DNA from: Schmidtea polychroa
Taxonomy: Eukaryota
DNA: 64,000 nucleotides
Assembly (NCBI GenBank): GCA_044892525.1
Contig: CM097885.1
Location: forward strand, 217,372,001 to 217,436,000
Direction of reading: 5' to 3'
Of the stretch, positions 14,037-58,600 are shown one piece after another. A program made the translations under genes and the position numbers. Under the pieces are notes generated by a model. That model was not told where the DNA came from. It ran no database searches and saw nothing but the letters and a program-made list of their open reading frames with translations. How positions within the stretch are numbered: the stretch's first letter is position 1; every line of letters starts with the position of its first letter.

Positions 14037-14495
14037 ATGGAGAACCTGCGTAAAGATCGAGAGCAGGCTCAGAAACGCGCTGACGAACTCCGAGTCCGAG
14101 TGGACAAATTGAAAGGAAAATGCCGGGAGTTCGAGGGGACCTGGTTAAGTCCCGAAGCGATGAAGAAGAAAACTGCCCAGATCCTCCAGCTACAAACACA
14201 GGCCGCTCAGGACCAAATGGAGATCCGCGCCCTGAAATTGCAGGTGCGGGCACTCGAGACCGAGCGAAATGAGCAGGTGGTGCAAGAGGCCGTGGCAAGA
14301 CAAATCCGGCCACTGACCGTTGAACTCGCGGCGATATATCCCCCAGCCGCCGAAAATAAGCCCAAAAGAAAACGGCTTGGGCGAAACATTCGGGAAAAAT
14401 TGAAGAAGGCCAGGCTGGCCGAGTACGAGCGGCAAGCAAATTCATCGCAAGCGTCTACGACGGGGTTGGCCAGCTCTACCAACAAGCCGAGTTGA
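14037..14495 (+). CDS. Unknown coiled-coil protein with a KR-rich NLS-like motif (ORF track starts at 14010; likely ATG 14037)
   Basis: Intact GC-rich ORF: MENLRKDREQAQKRADELRVRVDKLKGKCREFEGTWLSPEAMKKK..KPKRKRLGR. Homologous to 57781-58443 (see findings). Confidence 0.65.
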   Translation: MENLRKDREQAQKRADELRVRVDKLKGKCREFEGTWLSPEAMKKKTAQILQLQTQAAQDQMEIRALKLQVRALETERNEQVVQEAVARQIRPLTVELAAIYPPAAENKPKRKRLGRNIREKLKKARLAEYERQANSSQASTTGLASSTNKPS

Positions 14496-17266
14496 ACTTT
14501 TATTCTGGTTTATATATCCTTGTAGTGTGTTGTGAATATTTTGTAGTATTAAAAGAATATTTTTTTTGTTAAAATAATACATATTTCGTAGTACTAAAAT
14601 CATATTCGATATATTTTATGATTGCCTGAGAAATGAGAGTTTGTGCGTAAGGTTGGGAAAACAATTTTGATAAGGGACCTAAGAAATCGGACACACACCT
14701 TCTATCGGTAGTCCGTGAACCCATGGAGTACTCGACAATTACAGTGCCTCGATGCGCTCACTTTTTGCGAGTACTCAACCCTTGGTACAGTACCAACGTT
14801 GATTACTCAACGGGTACCAAGCGGAAAGACAATGTTGCATGTTGGGTTACGCTGGTAACAGCACTTAAACATTCGACCACCAGTAACCCACCATTTGTAT
14901 TGAAGTGACGCTGAGGTAGTGAAGGCTTCATCGAATGATTCGATAATTTTTCAGCACATATGACACATTGATGCTTTGAATTTCTTTCTTCGCCACACCA
15001 CGAAAATCCAAAAGATAAATAATTATCATCATATCGCTTAATTTTTGGCAGTTTTCGATTGTTATCATCTGAGTCTCGATGAGTTCTATCTTCACGGGCG
15101 TCTGCAGCTGTCTGTGTTGTTTCAGTGCTTGCGCGTGCGGCGCGAGAGTACTTTCTTTTTGACGGTTGTTGTTTGAGCCATTTATCCATATCTCAGTTCT
15201 GAAGTTATTTATTTAGTTGAAAATGTTAAAAAATCATTAATTATTTATTTCATATTGAAAATGTTTTACTGTTTTTCAATCGTTGGATAATATTACAAAT
15301 AGAGCGACGCTTGGCAGTGACATAGATTAACAAAGACCTTATACATTATGAAGTTATGAACCATAGAATTGCCAAAGACTATTTATTGAAGTTGATGCTA
15401 GTTATCGTTTATTTACAATTTAAATTTCAATATTCCAAGATTAACTGAATTAAATGAAGAATATTTATTTTAATTGCTAACGTTCTAAAATTGAAACATG
15501 ACGTCATACAGAACAAGAAATTCTTATCAACAAAAAAAATTATTATTGTAATTATTGTGTAACATTGGTAAGATCATGGGGTTGCGCGTACCCCTTTGCA
15601 ACAGCCGGCGTACCCCTAGGGGTACGCGTACCACCGGTTGAGAACCTCTGCCCTATATTATCCTAACCCTTATAATTAATGTTATGAATGACTGCATTTT
15701 GATTGATTGGGTCCTCACATTATGTCATTGTTTATTATTTATCCCAATGAAGTATGCACTGGGAACATGCATTTAGTCTATATAATGTCTACTTTTCGTG
15801 AGTAAAACTTTTTACGATTTGTTATTTAAACTTATTATAATGACAACATTATTTGTTCAGATATAGCACCTCAATACATAAAATGTATCATTACAGCCGC
15901 GAACATTTTCTATTGAATTTCACGTTTATCGAGTGACTTTGGATTACAAATGATAAACAAAATATTCCGAAATTTTAATAAAATTCTAATTTACTTTTTT
16001 ATTATTCATTAACATTTCTTCTTTTATGTGTAAAAAATAAATAAAAATAGCGTTACACGCAGAAAGACAGATGTAAATTAAGGGAGAATCTATATGACAT
16101 TTGAGCTGTATTGATAAATTAACATGAGTCGTTTTCCTGAGCTAAGTTGGATGTTCAGTATTTGTCAATTCCATCAAATTCTGCTGACACTATTTATACA
16201 GAAATGTTCCACAACACCTTGAATTAAATTTTGAAATCTAGGTCAGCAAGTTATGTGTATGATTTGAGCTTTTCTCAGTAATTAACAGTTTTACATAAAA
16301 TTGAACTTCTACCCTTAAATCAACATGGAGAAATGGAATAATGGTTCTGCATTATGGTACCTGTATTTTTTTAAAACTATTTTAAGGTTTGTATTCGTGT
16401 TTTTGTCTAGGCTTTTCATGTTTTATTGAGGCATTAATTATCATTTTATAAACCTTTTATCATTTANNNNNNNNNNNNNNNNNNNNNNNNNNNNNNNNNN
16501 NNNNNNNNNNNNNNNNNNNNNNNNNNNNNNNNNNNNNNNNNNNNNNNNNNNNNNNNNNNNNNNNNNNNNNNNNNNNNNNNNNNNNNNNNNNNNNNNNNNN
16601 NNNNNNNNNNNNNNNNNNNNNNNNNNNNNNNNNNNNNNNNNNNNNNNNNNNNNNNNNATAAAACTATTGTATTCTAAAATAATAATTGGTTTTTACTAAA
16701 TTAAATAAATTACTTTAATTTTAACAAAAGTTTATCAAATAGTTACCAAATAGTTGCGTGATAGGAAAAATTATGTGAATTTGTCTCTTCTATTCAAAAT
16801 GAAACAAAAAAATGTTTCTTAATTGGCGACTTTGTCTATTGGTATTGAATAAGCAAAAAAATCATCTGTTAGTGTGGTATATAAATGTGACAAAAAAAAT
16901 TTTGCTTCTATCAATTTTTCTATTTACATTAATACTAGTTGGTGGTCAACAAAATTAATTACATTGTACGTATTATAGAAAAACAATTATAAAAAAAATA
17001 GTATATGATATACAACTTTATGAGCTTGATGTAATTTTTTTCTATTTTGCAAAAGTATTTTGTAAACCTGTTTTATATTCTGTTGTTGACATAACTTCAT
17101 TAGTTGTTCGCGTCTCATTTCTTTTACTCGAATATTAAATTTTAGAAATTATAGTGAACCATCGCATATTTTATAATATAAGACAGTAATTTAGAGTTTT
17201 ATCAAAGAAAATACAACTTAATTTTGGATTAGTATATAGCTAATTATTCAATTTTAGATTTAGTTA

Positions 17267-17359
17267 TTGTATTTATTAAAAAGCTTGACTATGAATCAGT
17301 AAATATATCAAAAACATTGATATTTACTGATTCATAGTCAATCTTTTTAATAAATACAA
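17267..17359. repeat. 93-bp palindrome built from a Penelope-associated 3' terminal motif
   Basis: Arms TTGTATTTATTAAAAAGCTTGACTATGAATCAGTAAATAT(AT)C and GATATTTACTGATTCATAGTCAATCTTTTTAATAAATACAA around a ~9-nt loop. The same motif occurs at 32613-32660 and 51484-51526. Confidence 0.85.
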
Positions 17360-19889
17360 TGTCAATGGAAAAGAAAGTAGTGGTGAAATTTCAAAAAGTT
17401 ATTAGTTATTAACTTGAAAATTAAATAATACTGCAACTTAAAGGTGAAATTAAATCTAAAATGAGTCTATTTTTAAAATAGCTTCCAAAGTCAATTTATA
17501 AGTTTTATTGCCAAAAAAATTTAATTAAACAGCACAGCCAATGCAAATAGATTTAAATTACTTCGGAAGTTTATTCAAATCAGACAACTTTGATTATACA
17601 GTATATGACCTAGACATTCATATAGCTAAACAACCAAAGAAATCTCGATTTGATATTTGTTAGTAAATTCACCTGACATAGATATATTTTTTAAAAAATT
17701 AATCATAATATAATATGAAACCAGCTTTCAATTCTGAAATTAAAAGTTAATTTTAATTAAAATTCTAAATACTTCTGTCATTGATTCTAAAACTTTGAAA
17801 TTGTATAATCTGAGCATAAAATGGCCATTGAAAAGTCATTGAAAATATTATGAAACAACAGCCTTTACAAAATGAATAATTAATGTTTATACCAAAATTC
17901 AATTGAAAATCAATCTGATTGGCTGATTGGAAACAATGAATATCCTTTCGTTTTATAACAAATAATACAAGATACGATTTATTTCACGTAATTTTTCTCC
18001 ACAAGTCCCAGCATAATGATGAATGGAAACCCACTCCGAATTGAAATTATGATTAATGTATTCAAAATGAATATCAAATGATAATTAGATTTGAAATATA
18101 AAAAAAATTTACCTAAGCTGCTTTTAAATCCAAATAAATTCATAAAGCTTTGCATAATTTAATTGTATTATCAAAAAGGTTACTATGTTAATTTTTTTTT
18201 GGGAACAAATCAAAAACCGACTCCATTTTCTCATTAAATTAAAACAACAAAATTTAATACAATAATAAGTTCCGTTTTCAATGCGTTAAGTAAAGATTCA
18301 ATTGTCAATAGTAACCGATTAGGCTTGATTCCAATTTTCCATACATAAACTATGACGCCACAAACTTTTTTATTCTTTTCGAATCCGGCCTCCCACAAAC
18401 AAGTGAAATTTTCAGTATTAATTGTAAAACCATTTGATAAATCAAACAATTTCTGATACATAATCACATCACTACTTTCCTTAATCTTCATCTAAAATAA
18501 ATAACATAACGTTGATATATTTTGCCACTACATTGACTATCAAACTTGGAGGTTTTGTTTTCCTATTGAAATGATGGATATTACCAGCAATATATTTATT
18601 TATTAGTTTGTATTTTTGTATTTATTATGACGTAGGGACTCCCTGGCGACTTATAATATAAATATTAATATGTACCTTTTTCTTTGTTATCCACCCATGC
18701 CTTTCCTCCGAAAAATGTTAAATCTTCGAATATTTCATTTATCTTTCGCACTAAATTTCCTTTTTTTTTAATTTTACAGCATTTTAATTGATTTGCATTC
18801 GAGTTTTATGCTGAATTTATTTGCATAACTTCAATAATATAGTAAAAATCTCTTTTATGAACCAGGGTTTTGAAATTGTAATTATTTTGCACTATTTTTG
18901 TTATAGGAATTGTCAGTTTTCAAGTCAGTAAATCCACTATTTATAATAAAATTGAGAGGTCTCAAAATATGAGCTTCTCATTCTTGGTCACTATATATAA
19001 TATATAACGAATGAATCACAAATCAAATTAAACCATGCAATAGAAACCCATGTTTGAGATCTGATTATATTTTCCTTGTATATATAAATCTTTATGCGTT
19101 GATTTAATTTAATTTATTTATTTAAAATTGTGACATTACAACAAAGAACATAAATTACAGAACAATTATCTACAAATTAAGGTCTTAATTTATATATTAT
19201 AAGACAATAAATAAGGGCCTAAATTAGAAAAAAGAAAAGCCTCAATAATAAAAAAACTAATTAATAATATCCTGACAATAAGTAAGTTCCTGCAATATCG
19301 AAAGTTAGAAAATTTTAATGCGAGAAGAAAATAAATTCATACATTCAAGTACGATGCACAACATTTATATAATAGAAATACACACAGTTGAACAATAAAT
19401 AACTGCCCCATTCTTCAAGGAATTACAAATGATGTTTATACTTGCGAACGTTTTGGTAGTGTGTTTCTTGCAGATTTTTCCTTTCTCCTCGAGTTGTCAT
19501 TGTGTGAATATTTTCGGCGTAGTCGCCAGTTACAACAATCGGTTCCATCTAAATATTTATTAATTATTAACACAGAGTTATCACTTTTAAATATTGTATT
19601 GAACTATTGAATTATGCAATATACTCTGAACTGCTTCACATTTGGTCTTTAGCCTCTAATGTAATATCATTACTAATACTATATATGAATACTATAATTT
19701 TAGATATCACAAATAATTCACACAAATAAAATATTTTTATTGGTTCACTCTCACTTTTCAATGTTTTCATTCAACGTTTTCATTGTCATCCATTGTTTTC
19801 ATTCGATTCAATGAAAAGGCGATAAATGGTTTGTTTTTAAAATCCTCTTTTACACAAAAGAGAAACGAGCCTCGGCCGTTAAACATTTA

Positions 19890-19985
19890 TATTTTTAGTT
19901 CGGATTATGCCGTTCCCTTTTAAATTATTTGAATGGAGTTCATCCCAATATTAAGTTTACAGTGGAAGAAGTCAATTCTTTTCTT
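19890..19985 (+). pseudogene. Penelope-like RT C-terminal fragment
   Basis: Translates YLNGVHPNIKFTVEEVNS, matching the Penelope motif LN..HPNIKFT.E.E. Confidence 0.65.
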
Positions 19986-20018
19986 CAATTTTTACTCCTT
20001 ATATACTTATTTTACTAT

Positions 20019-23000
20019 TGTAAGACTAAACGTTTTTACAAATTCTATTTTTACGACATTTTTATAATATTAAAACAACATTAATTGTTTAATATTACAC
20101 TATTCCTACATTCCCACCAGATTCATCTGAATCTTTAACAACTCTTTTTCTAATATTGGCCACGTGCCGCGGCATATCATATCCGCTACACCTGACTAAA
20201 ATTTTTTGTATTTGATAATGGTTTAATGATATGCCCGTCTTTCCATCTTTCTGTGCATTTTTGATTCAAATTCGTTTTTATCCACACTGGGTCACCAGCA
20301 GAATATTTTGCTTCGATTATTATCTCTTTTTTATTGTAGCTTGGCAGATTCAGCTTTGGAGTGTATCTAAATATGGCTCTAGATGGACAAATATTATTGT
20401 TGTTTGGCGTATTATTGAACCAGTACACAGTTTCTGAGATCGTTCCTGAGAACCTAGCTGCAAGCGATTTGATTGTCCGATGGCTGCGTTCAATGATCCC
20501 GTTTCCCGTTGGGCGGTTCACTGTTCTAAATACCAACTCAACATTCTATGTATCTGCTAATTCTTGAAATGTTCGAGATCTAAAAGATAAGTAATTATCT
20601 AATAATATTTCACTTGGAGCTCCTCTTTCATAAAGCACTTCATTTAAAGCATTACATATTTCTTCTACATTTTCATTCTTAATTTTCTTCCAGATTGCAT
20701 ATCTCGATGGTCCACAATCAGTAATTGTCAAATATTTATCTTTAGCAAATTTAGCTACATCAATAGCTAAACGGCACCAATTTTCATCACAGTTTAGTTC
20801 ACCTTTTTCCCACGTTGCTGGCGCTGGGTCAATTGATAGGCATTGATTACAACTTGCAATTATTTCTGAGATCTCATTATCCACATTTAGTAGCCCCGCT
20901 TCCGATGCTAAGAATCGCATACGATTTTTCCCTACATGGTAGTTCTTGTGAATCTATAATAACACATCTTTCGAGCTTTTTTGATTGCCTTAGAGCTGCG
21001 ACTTCTTTTTTAATAATCATCCAGTTGGCTGGTACTCTCGTTAATACATTAGCCTTGTTATTTTCTGTAGATACAAACTCAATGCCCATTTTAAGTTCAT
21101 ACTCAATCGCTAGATCTTTTAAAAGCTCCAGCCTTCGTCGTATATACAACTCTGAATTTGCTTTTGTATGTATTTTTCTGTCGCTTGATAATATGCTGTT
21201 AACCCAACACACAACTGATTTACTTTCGGATTTAATTTTGATGTACTTTAGATTCCATTTAATACATAAATTAATACCCTTCACAATCGCTTCTAATTCC
21301 ACCAAATTAATGTGCCTTGAATCATCAGGTTTTTGCAACCAACACGCATCTTCAACCACTGAACCTTCCATTTCTAATACAATTTCAATGGCGATCGAAC
21401 TTGCATCGCACCAAATTATGCCTGTCTGATTGCTGGGAACACTCCAAATACCTGACGATGGATCTCTTTCATTTTATTTTTCTAATAACCATTTTACTTT
21501 GTCAACGATATGATTTTCTATAGAATCATCCCAATTTCCACTGGATAGCGTCTTGATATATGAGCAGGCTGGCCGCAACCACGCAGGCACAGGATAAATT
21601 ACAACTAACTGCCCACATAACGAATACAGCTCTCTTCTTGAAACCCCTTTATTTAATTCATTTATTCGTATATCGTCTGATCTTTTCCAATGTAGTTCGT
21701 TATTCTTTTTTCGTTGGCGCAAAATTCAATCCAAATCCCATTCTCGTAAGCGCATATCTCTCCCAATTAACTATACAAGATTGATATCACCAAATGCTTT
21801 TATCCACGTGTATTTGCATATATGCATCAGATAAATCTAAAATTGCAAATTCTTTACTTAAACATCTCCATGATCGTAATTTTTCAGAACAGATATCTGC
21901 ATTCCCACTATATACATCAATATATTTATTGATACTCCTAAAGTCAAATACTGGACGCAATTTCGCTTTATTTAACTGAATTAATACCATAAATAGGTAC
22001 TGATCCGATAGGTCTGCCCATTGTTTTCTCGTCGTAATCAACTAGATAGCTGTTAGATATCCAAGAATTCAAGATACGCATCGTCTCCTGATCTTTACTA
22101 CAATTATCATAAAAGTTTGAATTTCTATTAGGTAGAAATTTTTGCGGCTCTGACTTCCAATTCCATTTGACAATCCATTTCTCGTTTTCAAATCTCGCAG
22201 AGAAATTTTCTTTCAATATTTCTGGCATACTATTACTATAGCACGCTACGTGACAAGGTGCTTCTTCGCATCCGAACATGACTTTTTATTCAATCGAACT
22301 CCACCAAACCTATTAATAGCATTCACTCCTAAAATTACATCATAATTGGATACTAATTTCAGGTATATTAAACAACCAATATTAAATAACTTATCTCCAA
22401 CCCATATATCAACTTTAATTCTCTCAACATATATGATTGAACCATCAAGCATCGCTACCGCAGTCATAGATTTTCGTGAATTTCCTTTTACTATAGTGTA
22501 GTGCTGCCCGAATCAACTAAAAATGCTTTTTACATCACCATTTACTTTTAGGAGCATCACATATTCACAATTCTTGGGGCCACACTCGACACATTGTGTA
22601 TAGCCCCTTGATCTTTTCCCGACTTGCAAAACCTTGAAATATGTCCCATAATACCGCATTTTGCACATCTGATATTGCGTCTTTCTGGACAGTATCTTAC
22701 CACATGATTAGCACTATTGCATATATAGCATTTTCGATTGGCTTGTCTTCCACTATCTGATTTCGGTACTACTACTGCAACCGTTCATTGTCATAAAATT
22801 GATGACTTTCGATTTTCTTTGCCTGAGCAGCTAACTCATTCATTGTTGACGCTGTTGACATCTTTAGTTGATTTGACAAATCACTTGGTAAGCTATTTAC
22901 AAAAAATCAGGTTAGTAGATCACCTGAACATTCGAACAGTGATCTTAATTCATTTACATGAACGTCCAAGTTATCACCCATTATCTTTTTCTGTAAAAGT

Positions 23001-23352
23001 TTCGTAAAGGCTTCTTGCTCGCTTATCCCGAAAGTTTTCAATAATTCCTTCTGCAGCATTCCAAAATCCATTGTCGTATTGCTTTTCTTTAACTGTTTGA
23101 AAACTGCATAAAAACTGCCCTTCGGGTAAAAAATGGCATTACATTCATGACATTTTTTACATTCTTGGCTTCCAAAATAATTTCGAGTTTGTCCAATCAT
23201 TTTTCCACATCTGTATTTTTGCCATAGAATTATCAATTATAATCTTGTTGATTTCCATTGCCCATATAGCTTGTAAGACTAAACGTTTTATAAAATTCTA
23301 TTTTTACGACATTTTTATAATATTAAAACAACATTAATTGTTTAATATTACA
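20019..23352 (-). mobile_element. Compact Ty3/Gypsy LTR retrotransposon (3.33 kb, 81-bp LTRs), defective
   Basis: LTRs 20019-20099 and 23272-23352 (TG..CA, nearly identical). Purine tract GGTGGGAATGTAGGAATAG before the 3' LTR. TSD CTAT/TTAT. Gag with two CCHC knuckles (~22620-22737: CYICNSANHVVRYC, CAKCGIMGHISRFC), protease VDSGS (~22510), RT (LRPVFDFRSIN..LDLSDAYMQIHVD), RNase H (WCDAS..HINLVELEAI) and integrase (AIDV..TDCGPSRYAIW..LDN..GNGIIERSHRTIK). Several frameshifts. Confidence 0.95.
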
Positions 23353-23531
23353 TTATTTCTACACCTATTTTATTGCGTTCACTAATATTGGTAGATAATT
23401 TTCACGAGCTTGAATACAGAAATGTTGAGAAATCCCTTCAAATTATGTTACATTACATTCATGATATTTAAGTTGATAAACAGAGATCACAACACAATCT
23501 AACCGAAATTTTAGACTTATTAATAAATATA

Positions 23532-25760: not shown

Positions 25761-26073
25761 TAAACTCCATATAATCTCTGTAAAATCAGTAAAATAATAA
25801 TAATAATTATTATAAAAATAATAACAATAATAACAAATAATAAATATTAATAAACAACAATAATAACATATAAATAAATATCATCATTTTCTATCCGTTA
25901 TTTTTTATAAAAGATAAAGTTCATGTATATTATAATAAACCAATAAATCAATAAAAATAAAATATATAATTACAGCTTAATAACATAAATAAAGAAATTT
26001 AGTAATCACATCCAAATTGTTAATAATCAAATATAAGTAATTATTACAATATAATAATGTTTATCTCGTCAAT

Positions 26074-26082
<9 letters not shown>

Positions 26083-26162
<80 letters not shown>
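26083..26162. repeat. (TA)n microsatellite
   Basis: About 40 perfect TA units. Confidence 0.98.
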
Positions 26163-26164
<2 letters not shown>

Positions 26165-28979: not shown

Positions 28980-29341
28980 ACTGCTGTATGAGTGTATGTA
29001 TATGAAAATTGTTCGCTATATTCATTGTAATTTCCAATATATTATTTTTTTGTAATTTATTGATTTTGAATTTCATATAGAATTAATTTTTTCTGATTAT
29101 TGTATTGTCTTCTTATATTTGTCAGTATTGAAACAAACATTTTTCTTTAAATTTTATAAGTTGTTTCTGGTTAATTAATATAAAATTATATTTTATATTT
29201 AACGATCATATAATATATGCGATTATTTTAGTAATTAACTTGGTAAATAAAAATTGTTAGTCCATCATATTATTACTCGAAATAAATTGGCATCCATTGT
29301 CAACGTTAAAGCGTTTTGAATTTGCGAAAAGGCCACTAGAT

Positions 29342-29590
29342 CAGTGGTGGCCAACCCAAATCAATCGAAGGGCCAAATTTTCGGAAAAATACTATCACGG
29401 GCCACAATAAATTCATTTAAATAAATAATACTTCGTTTTTACGATTCAAGTAAACTTAGAATTAATTTTTTTAATTAAAAACATGCTTAATTCGAATATG
29501 AATTCTAAAAAGACAATTATTGATTTGATGTTTAAAATTGTGTCCGGGCCACATCAAAAGGCTTCGCGGGCCACCGGTTGGCTATGGCTG
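29342..29590 (+). mobile_element. 249-bp hAT MITE, copy 1
   Basis: Ends CAGTGGTGGCCAACC..GGTTGGCTATGGCTG. TSD CACTAGAT/CATTAGAC (6/8). Near-identical inverted copy at 49023-49271. Confidence 0.9.
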
Positions 29591-46100: not shown

Positions 46101-49100
46101 TAAATGAAAATAAGAATATTCACACAAATTAATCATAATAATCGTAATCATATTGTATCAAACTAAAAATTATTTTAATCGAATTTTTATTTTTTTTTGA
46201 AAATAAAAACATTTTTTAAAATCATATAAAAATTATTTAAAAAAAAAATAAAGCTTAGTGTATCAATGAGAACTATGTCAGGAATAATGCAACCAATGTT
46301 GAGAATTTTGAAAAGCACTTTTGAATCGAAGGGGACGGAAAATTTGGAACTCACGATGAGGAAATTTTGCGAAAGTTATTTTGACGTGAATCTTATATAA
46401 ATATAAATTTTTCTTGTTATGTTAATGAAATTTGTGATGAGATTTTAAAAAGTGCGAAACGTATATAAGAGTTCGCAAACTATTCAAAAAAATATTACAT
46501 TATCTTTTTTTAAAAAAAAAGACTCCACCCGAGGAGTATGCGTGCGCATACTCAGGGGATGGGAGACGACATGCATGAGGAGACATTTAAATATTCTTTT
46601 ATATAAGTTAAATTTTGAATTTTTCATAAAAATAATTGTAGTAGGCATAGTGAGAGAGCAACTATACCATTTTAAACATTTAAGAATATTTCATTTTTGC
46701 GTAGCGTAGAATAAAACGAGGAAAAGATGATAATGAAATTTCATCTATAATAATAACAAATAAACCAGTAAATAGTCAAGCTTCTACTTCGAATATTTCA
46801 AGTATTTTTAAAAGTCAAGTGGATGATTCATTTCCTGCTGTTGTCTCTCGGCTGATTGCACGTTATGGTTTACATTCAGTAAAATTTGCACTTCCTATGA
46901 TTTGCAGAAATTCTTGACGAATAAGTATAAAAATGTTCCAAGTTCTTCAAACACAGTTCGAGAAATCGTTTTAAAATACGGTGAAAAAATTTGCTATGAG
47001 GTTATAAAGCATATTTCAAAACACAAAATTGCAAAAAAGTGGGTCAGTCTTACCTTCGACGAGTGGGCATCTATTAGCAATCGGCACTATAGAAATATAA
47101 ATATTCATGCAGCTGACAATTTTTGGAATATTGATTTAACGCGTGTTTCTGGACATCTACTAGCAGAAAACTGTATTACATTGTTGAAAAAAGAAATCGA
47201 AGAATTGAACATATGTTTCGAAGATTTTATTGCTATGACCATGTATGGAGCTTCAATTATGCAAAAGGTAGCTAGAGACATCCAAATAATTCACCAATTA
47301 TGCATGATCCATGGCATACAATTGGCCGTTATAAAAATACTTTATAACAATATTAGTTTTTCCTAGTATAAAAAGGAACACATAAATGAAGATACACCAT
47401 AAATATTTGATTCGAATGCGGAAGAAGACGATAATGAATACGCCGAAGGTGTTAATATCTATGGTAGCACTGTAATAAATTCATATGGATTGGAAACTAA
47501 TCAGATTCGATACGCCGATTTGTGACCGCTAGTGACAAAAATACGAAAAGTAATAAAATTATTTCGAAGATCGTCAACCAAAAATGATGCCATATTCCAG
47601 AAGAATTTTGTAAAAAACGTAGCTTAATTTTAATTCCCACACTAGAATGAACAGTTTGCTGTCAATGTTGGAGAAGTTCTCTGAAATAAAGCTTTGTGTA
47701 AGAAAAAACCTAATTGATTTAATATCTGACATTACACTTTCTGTAAATTATGTTGCAAAAATATGGTAGATGTAACTCTTAATTTCATGCTTAACGAGAT
47801 AAGCGTGCAAAACACAATTATGAGTAATTGTAAATTGTAAAAAGAGAAATTTGGTTTTTGAAGGAATTAAGGGAAAATATTTAATGACGGCTTTAGAAAG
47901 TCTAAAATCTATTCGGCCAGCAAATGTGGATTCCGAAAGAGTGTTTTCTACAGCTGGAATGTTTTGTACAAAAATAAGGTCAAATATTTGGACGACAAAA
48001 CCCTAGACATATTATTAAACGCTTATTTCATTGAAAATAAGTAAAATAAGACCCTTGGAAATAAAATATGGTTATTGAATTTAATATCAATATTGTTTTA
48101 CTGAATATATTGTTTTATTTAATCATCTTTATATTGTAACACATATTTCCTTCTATTATTGTATTTCTTTTTTTTAATACCGGTATTCATAAAAACTAAT
48201 ACCGCAATACTGATATTGAAAAATCCCCTATTTTTGCAAATCCTAGTTAAAACCCTTTTATCACTGTAAGTTCCTGAGACAAAGCGTGAGTCCAGCGAAA
48301 AGAAATTCCCTACAGAAACGAGTTCTAGGAAGGTGAGATCTGTAACATTAATAAAATTTATTAAAAAACCTGTTTATTTAAACAAATTGTCTTCGTATAT
48401 AAATTACAAATTTCATTTTCTTCAATTGATGGTTTTCGATATCTATAAAATAAAAATAAATTCTTTTATAAATTTTTTTAATAATATTATCATATAATTT
48501 AGTGAATTTCGGTCGCTCTGTATCAAAATGGTTTTAGCAACTGATATGTGCCAACATTTCCTCCAAATAAAAAAATTCAACAGCCATGTTCAGGCAAAAG
48601 AACAGTAAGAAAATATTTTTGGAAACTTTAAATGGACTATTTTGTATTAAACTTTTCTGATATTTATATTATAATTTTGAGAGAACTTTGCTATTTTCAA
48701 AGTTTTCTAAATCATAAATTGAAAAAACATAGTTAAAGGATTTTATTGAGTTGCCTTGTAACAAGGAACATTTACAATCTTCCCGCACACATTTTTCAGA
48801 ACCATTTCGAAGGAATTTTATTCTTTTCCCAAAAGAAATGTCAAGCTTCACTTTCTATATATTTTCCTGATTCAATTTTCGATTCTAACAATCAGCAATT
48901 CATACAACTTTTTTAGTTTCTTTTTTTTTCGTTTGTACAATATTCTGTAAAATTACCTATTTTTTTCTTTCTAGTTTCTTTAGAATTTTCAATTCGTTGA
49001 TTTTCAAAACTAAGGTTTAGATCAGCTATGGCCAACCGGTAGCCCGCGAAGCGTTTTGATGTGGCCCGGACACAATTTTAAACATCAAATCAATAATTGT

Positions 49101-52100
49101 CTTTTTTAGAATTCATATTCGAATTAAGCATGTTTTTAATTTAAAAAATTGATTCTAAGTTTACTTGAATTGTAAAAACGAGTTATATTTATTTAAATGA
49201 ATTTATTGTGGCCCGTGATAGTATTTTTCCGAAAATTTGGCCCTTCGATTGATTTGGGTTGGTCACCACTGGTTTAGATGATATTCAAATTCTTTAATGA
49301 ACAAATCTTCACAACAAAGCGACAAAAATCAAATTTAACCAAGTTTCATGGAAAACAATAAATACAAATACTAAATTTTTTAACTTTGTATTAATTTGAT
49401 CGCCATTTGAATAAATGGATTTAAGTAAAATTGCTGGATCTTGGATCACTGCATTTTCGTTTTCCCTTTTGTTGTACATTGTGATTAGAGCTTGACCCTT
49501 TACCTTTATTAAGATTATTCGATATATTATTCCACAGACGAGAAATGGAAACTATTAATATTACATTTTTTATATTCTATTAAACTATTTTAATCAGATG
49601 ACATAAACGTACTTTTATCTAAAAATAATTATCAACCGGTTCGGTATTTTGATAAACCTGTCTACGTGTTTTTTTAATGATTACCTTAAAATGTGAACGA
49701 TAACTTAATTTTACCCTTGAGGCCATAAAAACTTTTAATGGACTAAAGATGCTTAATATTAAATTAATTATAACATTTAGAATCAATTTTTAATTAATTA
49801 ACTATTTAAAATTAGTTAGTTGTAAGGTGGGGCTAAAGCGCCTTTTGATAAACAACAAATACATCAATGTAATATACACGAAATATTAATTAGAAATTCT
49901 ATTTCTGCTAATATTATGCAAATTTAATGAAGAGCCTCTTGAAAAACTACATTGTTTGTGAATTGTCTCTGGTCATTCAATAATCTTCCTTGCTGTGGAT
50001 TCGATTCAATATAAACCTTCACTTCACCAGCAATTCTTGATAGCGATAAAGCCACATACAGTTGGTCATGTGAAAATACTGGGGTCTCCAAATTGATGCC
50101 AACTTGATCAAATAACCAAGATTGATCGCAATAAACAAAATAAAATTTTTTGAAAAAAATCTAAAATCCAAAAAATATTCATATATATAAATTATATTAG
50201 CGTTACACAGCCAGTGATGAATAAGTGATGAATATATTTCATATACTTCGATCGATGGAAGATATTAATACTAATTATGTGAAGAGTGTGTTGAGTTCGA
50301 GTATGATGTAGTATATCGATAAAAACATAAAGCATAATATTAACATTTTTCTGTATTAAAAAATTTAGCTAAGAAAAACATCAATATATGCAAGTTTGAC
50401 ATAGGAAATAGATGGGTAATTCTTGACCGTGATTTTTTTTGTGAAAAATAATTGTAAAAAAAACGATTGTGAAGAATAATTATTGGAGAAGAGTTGAAGA
50501 AAAGAATTAGTTGAAAAATAAAACGAAAAGAAGTTGCTTGAGTATTTGAATAAATTTGTGAAGAAGGTCAAAGAAAACAACCAGCTCAAAGTCCCAGTTG
50601 ATAAACCATTCAGTAATTTGTGATCTTTTAATCTGGTGGTATACGCAAGTGCTATTCCTCACTGAGTGTTGTAATAAGCATTGTATAGTCACCAAGTAGA
50701 GTGTTGAATTGATTGTCAGTGTAAAGTGAAAGTTATTTGTGATTATCAATAAAGATTTCTGTTGTCAAGTGTTATTTTGGGATCAGTCAAAAACACGCTT
50801 GGAGTCAGAGTAACATTTAACTTTATCACCAACTCAATAACCTAACACTATGATAAATCTCTTCTCCCAATGGGACCACGACCAGCAAATATAAAGCTCT
50901 AGAGATGGGAAGATAAGCAAGCAGTTAGGGAATTTTAACTATATGATTGTGTCAAATTCATGTAAAGTACGCAATATGTTTATTAATGAGTCTGAAACTC
51001 TGATTGGATTGTGTTCTGATATTGTTTATCAGTTTTCGTGTAATGGGTATAATGCCACATACATTGAAAATACTTCCAGTCATCTCTGTATTCGAGCTCG
51101 ACAACAACATAGATTGAAGGCATTGACCAATATTAGTGAGCACAATAAGGACTGTAAGAAAAAAATAGATATGTCTGATTTTAAAATTTTATTTAAAAAT
51201 TTAAATAATTATTGGGAACATGTAATTTGTGAAGCGTTATTGATAAAGTCATTGGATCCGAAAATTAACATGCAAAATGCAGTTAATTGTGTTTTAAATG
51301 TTTTTAAATAGTTTTTTTGTATAATGTATGTATGGATTGTTATTGTTAAATTAAAAAATTATTAAATTATTAAATTAAATAATTTTGAATTTCTATATTT
51401 TAAAATTTTATTTTTGATTGCTATAATTTACAAAAAATCATTTGAAAAAGGCAGTGCCGAAAATTCGCGAATATCAGAAAAAACATCGATATCTTTACTG
51501 ATTCATAGTCAAGTTTTTTAATAAATAAAACAATTTATTATTTGAATTATAATTTTTATAATTATTAAAGAATAAAATATTTTTATTAAAAATTTGATAT
51601 AATTAATATAATTAATAAATTTATTCAAAAATCTATAATATATATATAGTTATTATATCCTACCTGTTGATAACAGGAAAATTACTAAATTAAATTTTAT
51701 ACATATTTATATTATCTAATATTTGTATTAATTTAGCAATGTTAAAAAAATATCTAAATTCATTAAAATGAAAACTGTTTAAATATTTCATTTGACAACA
51801 ATCAGTTTTCGAAATGAGAAATAATAAACATGACATCTTTAATGTCTACACAGACAATAAACAAACAATGCTTATTTCATATTTATCTTTTGGTTTCACT
51901 TTTGATTTTATTTTAATTCAATAATTTTTATATTAATTTTTGTAAGATTATCGTTCGAAACAATAAATAAGATACACAATATTTGGGCACAGCCTTTATC
52001 AAGTGTGCTTATTTCAATTATTTTAATTCCTTTTTACATAAATATTATCCAAGTCCAAATTATGAACCTTTAAATGCTTTGTATATTTCGTTCCGAAACT

Positions 52101-52929
52101 TCGAATGACAATCATTTGCATATTTTGTTAATGGATTGTTTACTTATTCATATTTGAATTTTGAAAGCGTATAGTCCAGGACCATTGACCTATTCGGAGA
52201 TCATAAAATCTTCAGCAACCAGTTCAACCGTATAAGAATATACTGGCTATTAACATGTCCATCGGAAAGTATTAGACTTTATGTTTATGGTTCAGTTTTT
52301 ATTTACAATGAGATTGAATAAAACTTTTCAAAAGAGCTAAATTGCTTTGAAAATTTAAATTTAATAAATTAATTGGAAGGGAAATTACAAATGGCTTTAG
52401 AACTTGAAAAAGTACTTAAAACACTCTAATTGAAATTAATGAAAACCTCACTAGTATGTATATAGAATAGGCCGCCAGTTCCATAAATTCGTATTCTACT
52501 TATGGTTGTGCAATTAATAAAGTTATCCAGAGTCAATAAAAACCAACTTAAGACCCACGATATATAAAATATAATCACTAGAGTTAATAATTATTTCAAA
52601 AATTTAATTTCTTTGAATAATTTCCTGGATTTATAATAGTACTCACTTGTTCAATTAGGTTTATATTTTTCAGAATTAAAGTTCCCGAATATCTAGCAGT
52701 TTTGTTACACACTGCCGATCTTTCTAATCCAGCTAAGGAATGGAAAACCCACTTAAGATGGGTTATACATATATTTTGTGAATTCTTTTCTCAAGTAAAT
52801 ATTAAAAATTTTAAGTCTTTACTTTTATTATTTACTCTTTATCTAAGGGTGACCGTGAAAAGGCACTGGGGTTGCCAATTTCTCCTTTGTGTGATCGACA
52901 TGCAATTCACATTCATCAAAGTCAAATCG
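31189..52929 (+). CDS. PDE1: PDE1-like 3',5'-cyclic nucleotide phosphodiesterase, N-terminal and catalytic exons
   Basis: Phase-consistent GT-AG exons: 31189-31328, 31367-31477, 31526-31687 (VPKEVQDWIQYTF, like PDE1 VPSEVRDWLASTF), 35592-35664, 36921-37037, 37085-37225 (NPYHNILHGADV), 40533-40633 (AAAIHDYDHQGVTNNF), 43220-43345 (YNDSSVQENHH), 48503-48604 (MVLATDM), 52674-52794 (LHTADLSNPAK..RW..EFFSQ) and 52848-52929 (GDREKALGLPISPLCDR..QSQI). A likely non-coding exon ends at the 31052/31053 donor. Confidence 0.93.
33080..35000 (+). mobile_element. Heavily decayed Ty3/Gypsy pol, same compact family as 20019-23352
   Basis: Protease VLVDSG (33153-), IENPDFCASFEGGKW, LQLHVDESL, GCGLSSASKIM, HYIDDI (~34000) and integrase WKRIAID..RGPVDEISCDN..SGNGIVELNHRTLK. 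No LTRs found. Confidence 0.85.
35293..35413. mobile_element. 121-bp hAT MITE
   Basis: TIRs CAGTGTTACTCAACC / CAGCGTTTATCAACC. Perfect TSD CATTATAG (35285-35292, 35414-35421). Confidence 0.88.
37903..38127. mobile_element. piggyBac-type MITE (225 bp)
   Basis: TTAA on both sides (37899-37902, 38128-38131). TIR CC(A/C)TTTGCGGTCC. Confidence 0.85.
40983..42676 (+). mobile_element. Tigger/pogo element with decayed CENP-B-HTH/DDE_1 transposase
   Basis: ORF 41153-41737 (VEDTLFIWF..RNQSIPIS..W.QRFRSRYNI..FNGDETGLFYKML..GKLSKERLT), continuing to LPPNLTSILQPMDQ. Degenerate TIRs TAGTGGTAATCGGTTATA / CAGTGGAAACCGGCTATA with TA flanks. Confidence 0.88.
43374..46029 (+). mobile_element. hAT (SPIN/GTF2IRD2-like, Buster group) transposon, decayed
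   Basis: Perfect 15-bp TIR CAGCGCTGCCCAACT. TSD TTATATAA/TTATTTAA. Transposase pieces 43779-44360 (PQCLECLQAVAVCKEYKIKRHY; FSVALDENTD), 44935-45296 and 45370-45852 (FGITYICERAFS). Confidence 0.93.
44368..44926 (+). mobile_element. Merlin (IS1016/ISXO2-like) DNA transposon nested in the hAT
   Basis: 25-bp perfect TIR GGTATAAGTATACAATAGGGGGGCC. 8-bp TSD GATTAAAG (44360-67, 44927-34). ORF 44581-44814 VNHLEHFIDPLTGVNTNGIEGSWALCK..SYLDEFMWRR. Internal N-gap. Confidence 0.92.
46700..48245 (+). pseudogene. Decayed hAT transposase (Ac/ZBED-like)
   Basis: SLTFDEWASISNRHY.NINIH, HQLCMIHGIQLAV and the C-terminal SIRPANVDSERVFSTAGMFCTKIRS. Possible right end TTTTGCAAATCCTA (~48232-48245); left end not found. 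Confidence 0.82.
49023..49271 (-). mobile_element. 249-bp hAT MITE, copy 2 (inverted relative to 29342-29590)
   Basis: Perfect TSD GTTTAGAT (49015-22, 49272-79). Roughly 94-95% identical by eye to the reverse complement of copy 1. Confidence 0.93.
49812..50110 (-). mobile_element. Helitron 3' remnant (RepHel helicase C-terminus plus 3' end)
   Basis: DQVGINLETPVFSHDQLYVALS..TNNVVFQEAL* matches VFSHGQLYVALSR..T.NVVY.EVL. Followed by a weak GC hairpin AAGGCGCTTTAGCCCCACCTT and CTAA|T. Confidence 0.85.
50340..51530 (+). mobile_element. Penelope-like retroelement 3' part: GIY-YIG endonuclease and terminal repeat
   Basis: ORF 50943-51311: IVYQFSC..NATYI.NT..HL.IR..QH..ISEH..C..FKIL..ICEALLIKSLDPKINMQ (Penelope GIY-YIG pattern). 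Followed by an AT-rich UTR and the repeated terminal motif with AATAAA (51484-51526). Confidence 0.88.
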
Positions 52930-53838
52930 GTATATTTTTATTGCTTTAATTTTTACTACACATGTTTGATGTATATATTTTTTATTGAATTATATTATGA
53001 TCCTCATCGTTGGATTTCGACATTCTTGATATATTAGCAATTTCTCGTGTGACATAAAGTAGATAACTTTCAACTTAGAAAGACTTTCAGTTAGCCTTGA
53101 TAGGTTTTCCGAAACGTATATCACTGATACGACTAAAATCTTTTTCACAAAATCTTTTGTATCATTTTTACAACATTCTTTCTTTTACATAGAATCACAA
53201 TATACATAAAAATTCTTTTTTTGCTGTTTGTAATGTATTTTCACCTTTAAAAAAGCATAATTAAAAAAGCATCATTTTAAAATAAAAAGTTTTGTCGTTC
53301 ATCTTTAAATTAATAACAAAAAAAATTAATCTGAGAATGTCACAATGGAATCCAAACTAATATCACTCTGTAAAATCTTTAGAATGGTGATTAAATTTAA
53401 ATTATTTTGCATGTGAATTAAAAAAATTTTAAAATTTATTTGGAAATGTTTAATTTAAAAATAATTAATTATTTAAAATTAATTTAAAATTAATAATAAT
53501 AATTTTATACTTTGTTTAATAAATCTATAATGTATAGTTTTTTCTCTCCTACAATCGAAATAAACATAGATAACAAAAGGTAATACATTAATTTAGAGCC
53601 TCAATAATATAAGTAACCAATAATAAATAAATAAATTAATATATATATATATATATATATCATTGACAACCTGAGATTAAATTAGAACTTTGACATTAAA
53701 TAAAAGTTTAAAATGTGGGAGATGTGGGATGAATGTGGAAGATTACTAATAAAAGAAAGGCAAATAACTACACGTAAACACGGTTCAAAATATTGTTGTA
53801 TTTTACTTATTTTTTTATGTAAGTGCACTTATCGGATA

Positions 53839-54327
53839 CCAATTTGACGAAATCGTTGGTTATGTTCTTCTAATGATTTACCAAATATAAAAACATTTCC
53901 TAAATATATTACGCATCATGGCAAGTCCTCATTTTTCAAAATAATTGTCATTAAGTTTTGAAAGGTTTCGATCGCGACACATAACCCACATGACATTCCT
54001 ATGAATTCAAACTGCTTGCATCTAAGTGTTGAATGCCATTTTTTGAACATAGTTTTTATTTAAAGGTGCCTGATAATATGCATTTGTAATATCTAAAATG
54101 GTAAAATATTTAGCATCTTCAATTGAGTCAAATATTTCTAAACTTTTTGGTATTGGGAATGATGATCTACGTATCTTTGAATTAAATGATCTGTAATCAA
54201 TATATATTTTTAAATCTACGTTTTTCTTTTTTCCAACTACAACTTGAAAATTTCATGGCAATGTACTAATCTGTATTATCAATGATTCATTCACATCTTT
54301 TAGATAGTTTTCTATGTTAAGTTCTTG
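53839..54327 (-). pseudogene. Ty3/Gypsy reverse transcriptase fragment (different family from the compact element)
   Basis: P*NFQVVVGKKK..IDYRSFN..FPIP..AKYFTILDITNAYYQ..FEF.GM..GLC.A..TFQNLM..CVIYLGNVFIF-GKSLEEH. Confidence 0.9.
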
Positions 54328-55329
54328 GATATGGAAATTGGAATCACCAATAGAAATTCCCGTTGATAAAAGGAGAGAGACCGTTTATGATTGGTCGAGA
54401 AAATAACAGTAAAGAATCAAGAAGAAATTAAGTTCTAATAAATATTAAATTATTAATTATTGAAAATAAAATTCATGAGAATTAAACAAGAAAATATATA
54501 TATTGTAGTTCCTTGGAAATAATGAAAAGTTAATATATTAATACTGACGCTAAAGTGATGTAATATTAATGAGATTTTTGATTGACCATAACCTCTTATA
54601 ATTATTGTTTATAAATGCGCCTGTATGTTTTCTTGAATGTTGAATGTTTGAGTTTTTTATTATTTATTCCAAAGATATATAATGATACACGTGCTGTAGA
54701 TAACAACATGTTTCATGCATAATATTTGTCATGAATGTATTTTTAGCGTAGTTGTTAATTATTTTAATTTCATTAATAATTTTGATAATTATTTTCAACA
54801 ACATACTTTTTAAGGCTTCATTGATTTCATCATTCAACCAACTTTTGACTTATTTTCCAATGTCAGTGAAGCGATATTGAACCAATTTCATTCTAAACCC
54901 GTCGGTAAAGAAAAGATTCTCAAAAAAATTAAACCGAAAAAAGGAATAAATAACCTCGTTATGCGTAAGATTTGTTGTAACATAATTCATAATGTTTATT
55001 GTTGATGAAAATTTAATACACTCATCCCCCAAATTTACACAATTTCTCTTTTACAACGGTTTTCAAACTAAAAAAAGTTTTGCACATTTGAGAGAGTTAA
55101 AAAATATTTACTGTATTGTTATGGTGTATTTTGTTTCTGCCGTTCGTTAACATTTAGGTATTGTTCCGCGAGAACTTGGACAATACAAGAAGAGCATAAA
55201 CAAGTGAAAGTGTGAAATCTTACATTTGTTGGTCTCGAAGCCATAAAAGCTGGAATGGAGTTGTGAGAGCTTTCTGTTTTACAAATAACTTAAAAATTAG
55301 ATACCATATTAAATAAAATTAAGCGAAAT

Positions 55330-58300
55330 AGCTAAGTGTGAAAGAAAATTAAGTAGTTAAATGGGAAAAACAACAATCTAAAAAAACAGCCTAAGGAAAC
55401 CACCAACAAACCCCAAATCAGGCAACCATAGCAAACAAATAAAGGAAAATAATTAAATGAGATAACAACAAAACAGCGGAGGATCAAAATAAATAAGAAA
55501 ATAAAAAAAAGCCAGCATAAAAACATAAAATAAAAATAAAAGAAATTAAAATAACAAACCATACGCAGAATTATCAATAGAAACCCACCAAAAACTAGGA
55601 AAATATAAAAATTAAATAAATGAATAGAATAATTAAATAAAACAAATAAATAAATTAAGAAAAACAAATAAAAATCCAAAAATAAGGAAATAATGAAAAA
55701 TACACCCTAACTAAGTCCTGATTGGACGAAAAATACTATATAAAGCGGTAACTTAGTTAGTTCGCTTAACTTCTAAAAAAACTTCGACAGATAAAAATTT
55801 TTTAATAAAATGTAACTTCTAAAAAAACTTCGACAGGGAACTTCAACCAGGAACTCTAAGAAACTTATACGACCGGACTACAATCAATATTACTATATTA
55901 ACTACTATAGCTAGAACCTAGAAATTTTCAGCGGAATTTCGAGAAATACATTTCAGTCTACAACGATTTTAAAACACCGGAGCAATTGCCACAAACTCAT
56001 TCAGTGAATTTTGAGATAACAAAATTGGAAATTTGGAATTGAGATAACTAAATTTTTATTTTTAATTTTTATCATTATGAATTATTAATCATTGTAACTG
56101 TATTGATCAAAATATCATGAACTTGTTTATTTTAATTTTTCTTCACGGAACCCGGCGACGATACCGTTTGGACAGCTGTACATGATCTCGGGCACTATCA
56201 AAAAAGTGATGATGAAGTGCAATTATGAATTCCGAGCGTTATGAAATTTCAACAGGACTCGAATGTCGTTCATGGCACGGATTATAAATCCTAATAAAAA
56301 TTGTCGATTTGGTGAGAAATTGAATTGAATGCCTCGACATTGAGGTGATGGATAGATTCGGGAGTATCATGTGCAGAGGCAAAGGGTATGGTCACTGGTA
56401 AGAATTTATATATAATATTTCAATATTTCGAAGTAGTTTTATGATTTATGATTATATATGCCAATAGGGTTGAACCGTCTAACACGGTCGTTCGATAATA
56501 GTCGGTACTTGTACTGGTAGTTTTCGAGTGAACCATGCGAGGTAGAGAGACCGAGAGTAGATTGACAATTTCTGGAATGACGAGAAGAAGGTTCGGGGTA
56601 GATATGCGAATAATATCATCATGGACGATAAATCTAGGAAGTTTACAATATTTTGCATGCATAAAATTGTTGAGCGTAAAACGGCCACTAAAAGCATTCT
56701 GCCGACCTTTTTCGTCCAAATTCAGCGGATAATCCAAAAATCCATTTCTGCTAAGGGCTAGTATATCTTTCCATTATTTCTTAAAGATTCTGTTTGCTAT
56801 TCGATAACAAGGATTCCACGGCCAGCACTTAGATGCAGTTGGCGATCACATATAGATTAGTGGCAAATTTTCGCATAGATTTCAGTTTGCACATCAGTCT
56901 CGTTTAAGTTACCAATACGCGGTGAATATTTCGTTGCCGTAAAATTCTCCAATAGACACGATCATACATTTCGTCGAGAAGTAAACAAAGTTAGTTAATA
57001 ATTTTATAGTCACTTCCGTTTGAATCGAATAAATTTAGTTTATGGACATTGCTAATAAACATACAGAGAACCAACCATGACCATAGACTAGCTGTGTACA
57101 ATATACTTCCCTAAGCAAATCCGTCATCTGGTATAACAATCATCATTAACAGTTTCTCTTAAAAATTTTCTCATTAAAACCAATATTCAGGATCGACGAC
57201 CGGATAAACTGTCTATATGTGCATCTCCAAATAAACAAATTCTGATGATAAATAAATATCGAAAGTCTCGCATTAAATCCACCTTATCAATGATAGAACA
57301 AATAAATAAATACGAAATCGCAAAATTTAGAAAATTAAATTGTAAAATCTACACCTATATGAGATAGGCATCGAATTAGTGGTAGGTCGTATGGCAAGTA
57401 TCAATGATTTTCGACAAGCTAATTAACATGTAACAATTAACGAACATTTATCTGAAATTTTAATTTATTATGAACTCGAGTTCCGAAACAGGTGTTAATG
57501 ATAATAAGGGCATAGTGAAATTCAACCACTAAATCATGACCCACTTATATAGTTTTCTATTTATTCAAGTAACTGTCTTATTTGTTGATTGATCCAACCA
57601 TTCCCGCCATTAATTCACTCAGCAGTATAAATTTCCGCGCCAAATGTATGAAGGTGAAAGTGAAGGATGAATTTTTCGACTAAATTTGAATTCCTGAGTG
57701 ACCGAGAAAGTGATAAGAGCGTCTGAGTAGGGTTGAGATAAGTTCATTGACGAGGCATAAATTAGTTATTCTATTTAGATATGTCCGAGCCTAACTTACC
57801 TCCACGCGGGCCGAGACCGTGTTTCTCGTGCGCCGATAAAAACGTGGATATCAGGAAACTACACGAGCACATAGGGGTTCTCAAAAAGCGTATCGAGACG
57901 CTAGAGCACACGTGGTTCTCCTTGCCACAAATGAAGGAAGAGAAAATGAAGATTCTCAGATTAGAGCACTGTCGTGACAGTCTCTTAGAAGAAATTCGCT
58001 GTCAGCGACTAACCATCAAAGCACAATCAAAGGCCCTTCATCAGGTCTACACAGAGTCTGAATTACGGAAGAGGGTTAGAGAATACCCAATCAAGGACGG
58101 GGTAAATGCATTCCCGCTTCATCATCGAGCGGATAAAACGGACGTCCCATTATTGTCGAACTGTGCGGGACATGGGCCCGATCTTCCGAAAATCATAGAC
58201 GCCATCCTAAGCGGGGCGGCTGCAACTCCTCCTTCTATACATATTCTCCATGAGTCGCTTCACCGTGTTCCCTCAGTCAATATCAGTCAACCATTTAGCA

Positions 58301-58600
58301 TAAGAAACGAAAACGGCCGTCAAGCCGAACTTCAAAGAGGAGAGAAAAAATGGAAGCGCTCGAAGCATCGTTATTCGCTGCTCAGTCAGCGATTCCCAAA
58401 GCCAATACTAACCCCCAGCCAGCGATATCCCATGACACCTTAAGAGTGATCTCTTCAGCAACAATGACCCCACCAAAAGACCCTTGGCTGCAGGTTGACA
58501 TTGATGCCCTGTTGACAGAAGGAGATGTGATGTAGGGAGGTGATTCGGCCAAAGTACCTTGAACTACTCGATAATTCCACTCGTCGCGGATGAAGACTCG
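55330..58600. mobile_element. Unclassified ~3.3-kb intronic block resembling the 9525-14893 insert (boundaries approximate)
   Basis: A-skewed left block, TATA-like TATATAAAG and a 24-bp direct repeat, decayed GC-richer interior, and a GC-rich coiled-coil ORF on the right. No TSD or TIR found. Confidence 0.45.
57781..58443 (+). CDS. Unknown 220-aa protein: CxxC, coiled coil, basic C-terminal patch
   Basis: Intact, visibly GC-rich ORF. Acceptor-like TTCTATTTAG 2 nt before the ATG. Homologous to 14037-14495. Confidence 0.6.
   Translation: MSEPNLPPRGPRPCFSCADKNVDIRKLHEHIGVLKKRIETLEHTWFSLPQMKEEKMKILRLEHCRDSLLEEIRCQRLTIKAQSKALHQVYTESELRKRVREYPIKDGVNAFPLHHRADKTDVPLLSNCAGHGPDLPKIIDAILSGAAATPPSIHILHESLHRVPSVNISQPFSIRNENGRQAELQRGEKKWKRSKHRYSLLSQRFPKPILTPSQRYPMTP

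Follow-up and report, generated by a model that had tools for sequence, protein, structure and literature searches.

A stretch of 64,000 nucleotides of the Schmidtea polychroa assembly (contig CM097885.1, positions 217,372,001 to 217,436,000 of the forward strand; hereafter the window, with positions counted from its first base) carries two open reading frames (ORFs), ORF1 and ORF2, which are homologous as judged by sequence comparison and are members of a rare, undescribed protein family of extremely narrow distribution. The family has a common predicted architecture, its two window copies are foreign in composition, its relatives are dispersed, and its protein is under constraint. Because the family is dispersed, intronless, compositionally foreign and diversified, with a constrained protein, we consider that it is best read as the cargo of a selfish element. 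Mobility of the family is plausible, and to the reading as a whole we give an even chance of being right.

The window has a guanine-plus-cytosine (GC) content of 29%, five runs of N and the aspect of an AT-rich animal genome laden with transposable elements (TEs). No run of N lies inside ORF1 or ORF2 or less than 1.7 kb from either, and the reading frames are therefore sound (coordinates in Table 1); the gap-free stretch 12258-16466 contains ORF1 and 44546-64000 contains ORF2. Three gaps (16467-16657, 32678-32885 and 44393-44545) lie between the two, so that their spacing of 43 kb and their common orientation depend on scaffolding. The peptides from which an initial annotation had proposed a new, element-borne protein family were located inside the two ORFs, at 14076-14252 (+) and 57847-58023 (+). 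An antisense ORF over ORF1 (13972-14445) was considered as a gene and rejected: it is open, but the open antisense frame of a metagenomic relative (contig L001, described below) differs in phase. This antisense frame is a by-product of composition and is not conserved.

When the two segments are aligned without gaps, 17 of 59 positions are identical, exactly the count first given, compared with 4.3 expected from the composition of both segments. Composition-adjusted BLASTP of ORF1 against ORF2 as a single pair yields 28 bits (E = 4e-5). The Smith-Waterman score is 74, compared with 32-34 ± 5 in composition-preserving shuffles, and none of 2000 shuffles reaches 74; the corresponding Gumbel P is 1e-5 to 5e-5. 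The similarity thus persists in the shuffling control that the initial annotation had called for. Among all 6471 pairs of window ORFs of at least 70 amino acids the ORF1/ORF2 pair ranks fifth, and only low-complexity pairs and true hAT pairs rank above it. After correction for all 6471 pairs about 0.1-0.3 pairs of this quality are expected by chance, and therefore the pairwise evidence alone is borderline. At the scale of the window neither tblastn nor tblastx reports the match, and comparison of the two loci as DNA and in translation shows no similarity outside the ORFs.

The decisive test used profiles made solely from proteins that lie outside the window, scanned over the 1389 six-frame segments of the window. 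Based on the ORF2-type profile, ORF2 is found at E = 1.2e-22 (76 bits) and ORF1 at E = 9.1e-6 (21-22 bits), with the next segment at 0.49. Based on the ORF1-type profile, ORF1 is found at E = 8e-23 (78 bits) and ORF2 at E = 0.016 (12 bits), with the next segment at 2.4. Each ORF is the second-best segment for the profile of the other type, which bears out the proposed homology. We also compared the family profiles with 177,635 distinct PDB sequences, coiled coils included, and no chain scored above 15 bits. Based on these two scans, the similarity of ORF1 and ORF2 survives correction for coiled coils as well as for composition. The two proteins are ~20% identical overall and ~30% identical across a core of 83 residues.

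Word-indexed protein searches with each ORF singly recovered no relative, and exhaustive profile search alone succeeded. A profile of the two sequences, searched exhaustively against 1.84 billion representative proteins, retrieved 9 matches at E ≤ 1e-3, and a second search with an ORF2-type alignment retrieved 4 further relatives (P0011-P0014); 13 relatives are all that were found in these very large collections. P0001 is an ORF1-type relative of 157 amino acids (E = 2.5e-14), and both it and its near-identical cluster mate P0010 derive from short ENA metagenome contigs, two in number. P0002-P0009 are eight ORF2-type modules from UniParc. The family comprises two subfamilies, A (ORF1, P0001 and P0010) and B (ORF2 and the others of P0002-P0014). 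In an alignment of 12 sequences Leu34, Thr44, Trp45, Glu71, Arg73 and Pro112 (ORF2 numbering) are invariant, and the same six columns remain invariant in an alignment of 14 sequences, where Pro112 of ORF2 corresponds to Pro101 in ORF1 numbering. The initial annotation did not recognise the family, and our searches agree with this: no Pfam family matches its members above threshold, no prokaryotic, PDB or BFVD relative was found, and scans of IMG/VR, JGI metagenomes and GTDB genomes with the family alignments returned no relatives. One Pfam candidate, an ANG-1-like match of ORF2 (E = 0.004, below the cut-off), was set aside as coiled-coil noise, given that no other member has it.

The ends of the protein are retained across considerable divergence. 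ORF1 and P0001/P0010 have equivalent starts and stops (161 versus 157 amino acids) at 37% identical residues, and the first four residues of ORF2 and P0005 match. Between ORF1 and its metagenomic relative, 75, 60 and 90 of 156 codons differ at the first, second and third positions, respectively. The ratio of nonsynonymous to synonymous substitution rates (dN/dS, Nei-Gojobori) is lower in the helical core (~0.22) than in the tail (0.73) and amounts to ~0.36 for the whole protein; dS is saturated. This shows that the protein is under constraint along the lineage connecting ORF1 and its relative; selection by the host is a separate matter. Purifying selection had initially been deduced from the intactness of two deeply diverged frames. 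The ratios agree with constraint on the protein, and selection by the host is unsupported: the window copies may be intact just as well because they arrived recently, which is what their foreign GC content points to.

AlphaFold models built with the family alignment predict helices at residues 2-44, 48-109 and 125-150 of ORF1 (predicted local distance difference test score, pLDDT, 80) and at residues 17-43, 48-89, 92-101, 135-143 (short) and 177-204 of ORF2 (pLDDT 67). In both models the long helical region has a single break, at residues 44-47, at the invariant Thr-Trp (GTWLSPE in ORF1, HTWFSLP in ORF2), and the second helix of the hairpin begins from a Ser/Pro-Pro-Glu-like cap. The B profile matches ORF2 solely over residues ~23-116. 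Past the helices, ORF2-type relatives have a conserved Asn/Ile-Pro/His stretch; they also have an Arg-rich tract and, in some of them, Pro-Pro-Pro-Tyr. The net charge is +15 for ORF1 and +14 for ORF2. The models show a predicted family architecture consisting of an N-terminal alpha-helical hairpin, a poorly predicted linker and a Lys/Arg-rich C-terminal helix. The probable role of a protein built in this way is to bind nucleic acids as a nucleus-directed oligomer; we infer both oligomerisation and binding from architecture and charge. Foldseek searches of PDB and BFVD returned generic helical hairpins only, none with E below 1e-3, and the best BFVD fold match (E = 6e-3, template-modelling score 0.27, root-mean-square deviation 26 Å) is not meaningful.

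Both ORFs lie in GC-rich islands whose surroundings have a GC content of 0.2-0.3. The GC content is 0.54 in ORF1 and 0.49 in ORF2, and at third codon positions it is 0.63 and 0.50, compared with 0.19-0.39 in all of the 13 other window ORFs that were measured, host and TE alike. A corresponding bias is apparent in the relatives, in which the module is richer in Gly, Ala, Arg and Pro and poorer in Phe, Tyr, Met, Ile, Asn and Lys than the host-derived remainder of the respective gene models. Another GC-rich island lies ~300 bp upstream of ORF1 (Table 1). Its composition is as foreign as that of ORF1, and its frame has a sub-threshold AT-hook match at the C-terminus; with its pieces searched one by one it shows no detectable relation to the family, and it has no counterpart upstream of ORF2. 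We considered this island, the out-of-frame tail that follows ORF2 (58350-58535) and the C-terminal part of P0014 as further pieces of the family, and none of them was significant.

The context of the relatives indicates dispersal. Eleven ORF2-type relatives occur in gene models of another AT-rich genome, and 10 of these models combine the module with part of a host gene, a different one in each (an SNF transporter, a CRAL-TRIO protein, ribosomal L21, the glycine-cleavage P protein, a subtilase, actin, a tyrosine phosphatase, an MCM protein, a sedlin/sybindin protein and an ankyrin protein). The side of the junction varies among the models, being N-terminal, C-terminal or in the middle. The parts of P0008 and P0014 outside the module have no Pfam match. 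These fusion gene models (P0002-P0014) are likely to be annotation chimeras. The ORF1-type gene was found on two metagenome contigs from different ENA samples (analyses ERZ2271643 and ERZ2270917), both of very low coverage (L001, positions 1-638, and L002, positions 1-549), which end at the same base, 21 nt past the stop. This common end points to the boundary of a unit present in several copies, or to the end of a linear molecule.

Under the reading as selfish-element cargo, ORF1 and ORF2 would be two intact, deeply divergent members of a family of small and strongly basic proteins that is restricted to one lineage and present in multiple copies. Each copy is a stand-alone intronless frame with its own start and stop, and the GC-rich island around it is foreign in composition to the AT-rich host. 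The family would travel on, or have been left behind by, a selfish element, be it a mobile element that encodes no enzyme or a virus-like source. In a more specific form, the islands would be independent captures from a hitherto unknown, diversified virus-like or episomal agent, or a new non-autonomous mobile unit with the hairpin protein as its only cargo. We hold this form to be unlikely; if it were true, the family would give the first access to that agent.

Several observations weigh against selfish-element cargo. No long terminal repeat (LTR), terminal inverted repeat (TIR), target-site duplication, poly(A) tail or repeated flank was found around ORF1 or ORF2, and the flanks of the two ORFs are unrelated to each other. 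In the 11 gene models no transposase, reverse transcriptase (RT), integrase, capsid or other element domain is joined to the module, and, where a genome is poorly annotated, an ordinary family of host genes can also yield fused gene models. The copies examined as DNA in their genomic context are two, ORF1 and ORF2. The modelled fold is generic, with no significant structural neighbour, and the suggested function is read solely from architecture and charge. The proposal that the family is element-borne is no more than plausible: it agrees with the occurrence of relatives beside 10 unrelated host genes, whereas inspection of the neighbourhoods, which the initial annotation had recommended, linked no replicase, integrase or capsid to any copy, nor was a transposase, LTR, TIR or repeated flank found.

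An alternative is that the ORFs are endogenised genes of a GC-richer, virus-like agent, each island being a separate and fairly recent capture of a single gene from a diversified outside pool. Deep divergence, intactness and foreign composition would all follow from such separate recent captures. The third-position GC content, far above that of all host and TE ORFs of the window, is consistent with this origin, as is the isolation of each copy as a single ORF lacking element ends. Putative oligomerisation helices, a disordered linker, an Arg-rich motif and, in several ORF2-type relatives, Pro-Pro-Pro-Tyr are further points of agreement; helices followed by a linker and an Arg-rich motif are a common layout among small viral nucleic-acid-binding or matrix-like proteins. 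However, IMG/VR holds no relative, there is no significant match among predicted viral structures, no viral Pfam family is found (two weak REV matches reflect the Arg-rich stretch only), and the relatives that have a context are all in eukaryotic gene models. We judge a viral origin of this kind to be an outside chance.

The family could instead be a lineage-specific host gene family, for example of nuclear or chromatin-associated basic coiled-coil proteins, that expanded by duplication and is not mobile. Its intact ORFs, conserved start and stop and dN/dS below 1 would be expected of host genes, transposition machinery was not found nearby, and TATA-like and polyadenylation-like strings occur near both ORFs, although these were seen by eye only. 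Against this, the codon composition is unlike that of every host ORF in the window, and the copies are dispersed beside unrelated genes and have repeatedly been swallowed into neighbouring gene models. The breakage of ORF1-type contigs from very low-coverage metagenomes at the same base in two samples is repeat-like, and the distribution is extremely narrow. We place this explanation on a par with viral capture, that is, as doubtful.

It is considerably less probable that the ORFs represent ORF1 or gag, the first frame of a known family of autonomous retroelements, with the part downstream absent here. The layout would fit, as a coiled coil with a basic tail is established as generic in many ORF1 proteins of long interspersed nuclear elements (LINEs; discussed in PMC3905857), and the window is full of hAT, Tc5/pogo and LTR-element debris. 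Yet the L1 ORF1p, Gag, capsid and zinc-knuckle families are unmatched in Pfam and in solved structures, and among the ORFs listed past either copy none resembles an RT, an endonuclease or an integrase. Moreover, such a domain is fused to the module in none of the 11 ORF2-type gene models, where a neighbouring ORF2 or pol would have been the most probable partner. Lastly, chance resemblance between two unrelated coiled-coil ORFs, which the 0.1-0.3 pairs expected by chance and the silence of window-scale tblastn and tblastx would allow, is effectively refuted by the reciprocal outside profiles, the matching residue position of the helix break in the two models, the six invariant columns of both alignments and the scores of at most 15 bits for PDB coiled coils, and we regard it as highly improbable.

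Table 1 Features of the two ORFs and of the GC-rich islands in the window
Feature	Position	Strand	Description
ORF1	14010-14495	+	complete ATG-to-stop, 161 amino acids; A-type (ORF1-type) family member
ORF1 region aligning with ORF2	14067..14324	+	residues ~20-105; within predicted helices 2-44 and 48-109, break at Trp45-Ser47
ORF1 Thr44-Trp45 codons	14139-14144	+	
ORF1 C-terminal helix (predicted)	14382..14459	+	residues 125-150; residues 121-140 Lys/Arg-rich, net +5
ORF2	57781-58443	+	complete ATG-to-stop, 220 amino acids; divergent B-type (ORF2-type) family member
ORF2 region matching the family	57832..58128	+	residues ~18-116; predicted helices 17-43, 48-89, 92-101, break at Thr44-Ser47
ORF2 Thr44-Trp45 codons	57910-57915	+	
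ORF2 C-terminal Lys/Arg-rich helix (predicted)	58309..58392	+	residues 177-204
GC-rich island coinciding with ORF1	14030..14500		GC 0.55-0.58
GC-rich island with ORF2 and ~170 bp past its stop	57700..58610		GC 0.45-0.50
Second GC-rich island	13347-13712	+	GC up to 0.60, ~300 bp upstream of ORF1; frame with one in-frame stop

The surroundings of the ORFs contain host genes and remnants of several kinds of TE. In the initial annotation both ORFs closed TE-like blocks on the right, and the left ends of these blocks were A-skewed. Stretches rich in A do exist (12558-12957 and 55500-55799), but they have no sequence in common and nothing ties them to the ORFs; this part of the proposal is unsupported. 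The stretch at 55500-55799 is low-complexity DNA ~0.5 kb beyond an exon of a phosphodiesterase gene. Four exons of that gene on the plus strand (37085-37240, 40533-40634, 52702-52791 and 52815-52946) match positions 1-21, 26-56, 149-182 and 182-211 of Pfam PDEase_I, the first weakly (E = 0.041, below the cut-off), and a fifth is likely at 54814-55002, based on a motif only. The gene extends over at least 18 kb, with large introns full of TE fragments, and ORF2 lies 2.8 kb downstream of the likely fifth exon on the same strand. Two ORFs overlap at 27245-28979 (+), and the longer of them (27600-28979, 459 amino acids) encodes RRM domains and a SPOC domain as in SPEN/RBM15-like proteins, in codons that are host-like and AT-rich. 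The pair probably represents one host gene, interrupted by a frameshift or by a short intron.

The TE debris of the window consists of hAT, Tc5/pogo and LTR-element (integrase, RNase H-like) fragments. Fragments of hAT elements lie at 7930-9227 (-), 14803-15189 (-) and 45060-45852 (+), with matches to the hAT dimerisation domain in the parts at 7930-8235 and 45370-45852. The fragment at 14803-15189, ~300 bp from ORF1, is an N-terminal hAT-like piece recognised by eye, with no Pfam match above threshold. Together with the C-terminal piece at 7930-9227 it could represent one element split by an insert of ~5.5 kb that includes ORF1, although the hAT copies are too divergent for this to be traced. 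An LTR-retroelement remnant at 20018-23363 (-) contains integrase-core and RNase H-like ORFs and is bracketed by 93-bp direct repeats (20018-20110 and 23271-23363) that are 94.6% identical. A sequence of 256 bp occurs twice in inverted orientation, at 29336-29590 and 49023-49277 (94.5% identical, 19 kb apart), and is probably present as two copies of a short dispersed repeat. Also observed were AT-rich tandem arrays at 11135-11516 and 11728-12138, with units of 22 nt and units of 9 nt that read as poly-Asn and enter the gap at 12119, and near-perfect palindromes at 2467-2643 and 17266-17360.

With these results, two orphan ORFs become a defined and searchable family of 15 sequences with a common predicted architecture. 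The family would mark an unrecognised type of selfish element, or the traces of a virus-like agent, in an AT-rich invertebrate lineage. In a public protein set the module contaminates the models of 10 or more unrelated host genes, and its recognition would clean the annotation. We consider the significance to be moderate, given that the family is narrow and its biology is read from sequence and models.

The known proteins that the family most nearly recalls differ from it in definite ways. LINE ORF1 proteins (L1 ORF1p, Pfam Transposase_22) are likewise small; they self-associate through an N-terminal coiled coil and bind nucleic acids through a basic part, as the present family is predicted to do. 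Non-autonomous LINE derivatives that contain ORF1 only, such as HAL1, are known. However, LINE ORF1p has an RRM and a C-terminal domain, where the family instead has a poorly predicted linker and one basic helix, and a LINE has an endonuclease/RT gene downstream and a poly(A) or repeat tail, neither of which was found at the window copies. No ORF1p Pfam family was matched by 16 members at E up to 10, and no solved ORF1p is among the PDB matches. In the literature on the ORF1 of Penelope-like elements we found nothing applicable.

Gag and capsid-like proteins of retroelements are basic, as is the family, and the Pro-Pro-Pro-Tyr of several relatives resembles the late domains of Gag. In contrast to Gag, a capsid-like fold, a zinc knuckle (CCHC), a Pfam or PDB match and a pol gene were all not found. 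Basic leucine-zipper (bZIP) proteins also combine a basic segment with long helices, and 3 of 16 members have sub-threshold HALZ matches. In bZIP proteins the basic part is directly N-terminal to the zipper, whereas the basic helix of the family lies far C-terminal of its helices, and the matches are all below the Pfam cut-off.

The small delta antigen resembles the family in its size, its N-terminal helices (oligomerising in the antigen, putatively so in the family) followed by Arg-rich motifs, and its GC-rich coding sequence. An origin from a delta-like agent was considered and rejected, as there is no delta-antigen match in Pfam or PDB, no ribozyme match in Rfam and no rod-like self-complementary folding (z = -0.9 and +1.3) such as a delta-like unit of ~1.7 kb would show. 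None of these comparisons places the family with LINE ORF1p, Gag, delta antigen or known viral proteins. As cargo of a selfish element, its protein may serve much as LINE ORF1 proteins and Gag-like chaperones do, while standing outside those families.

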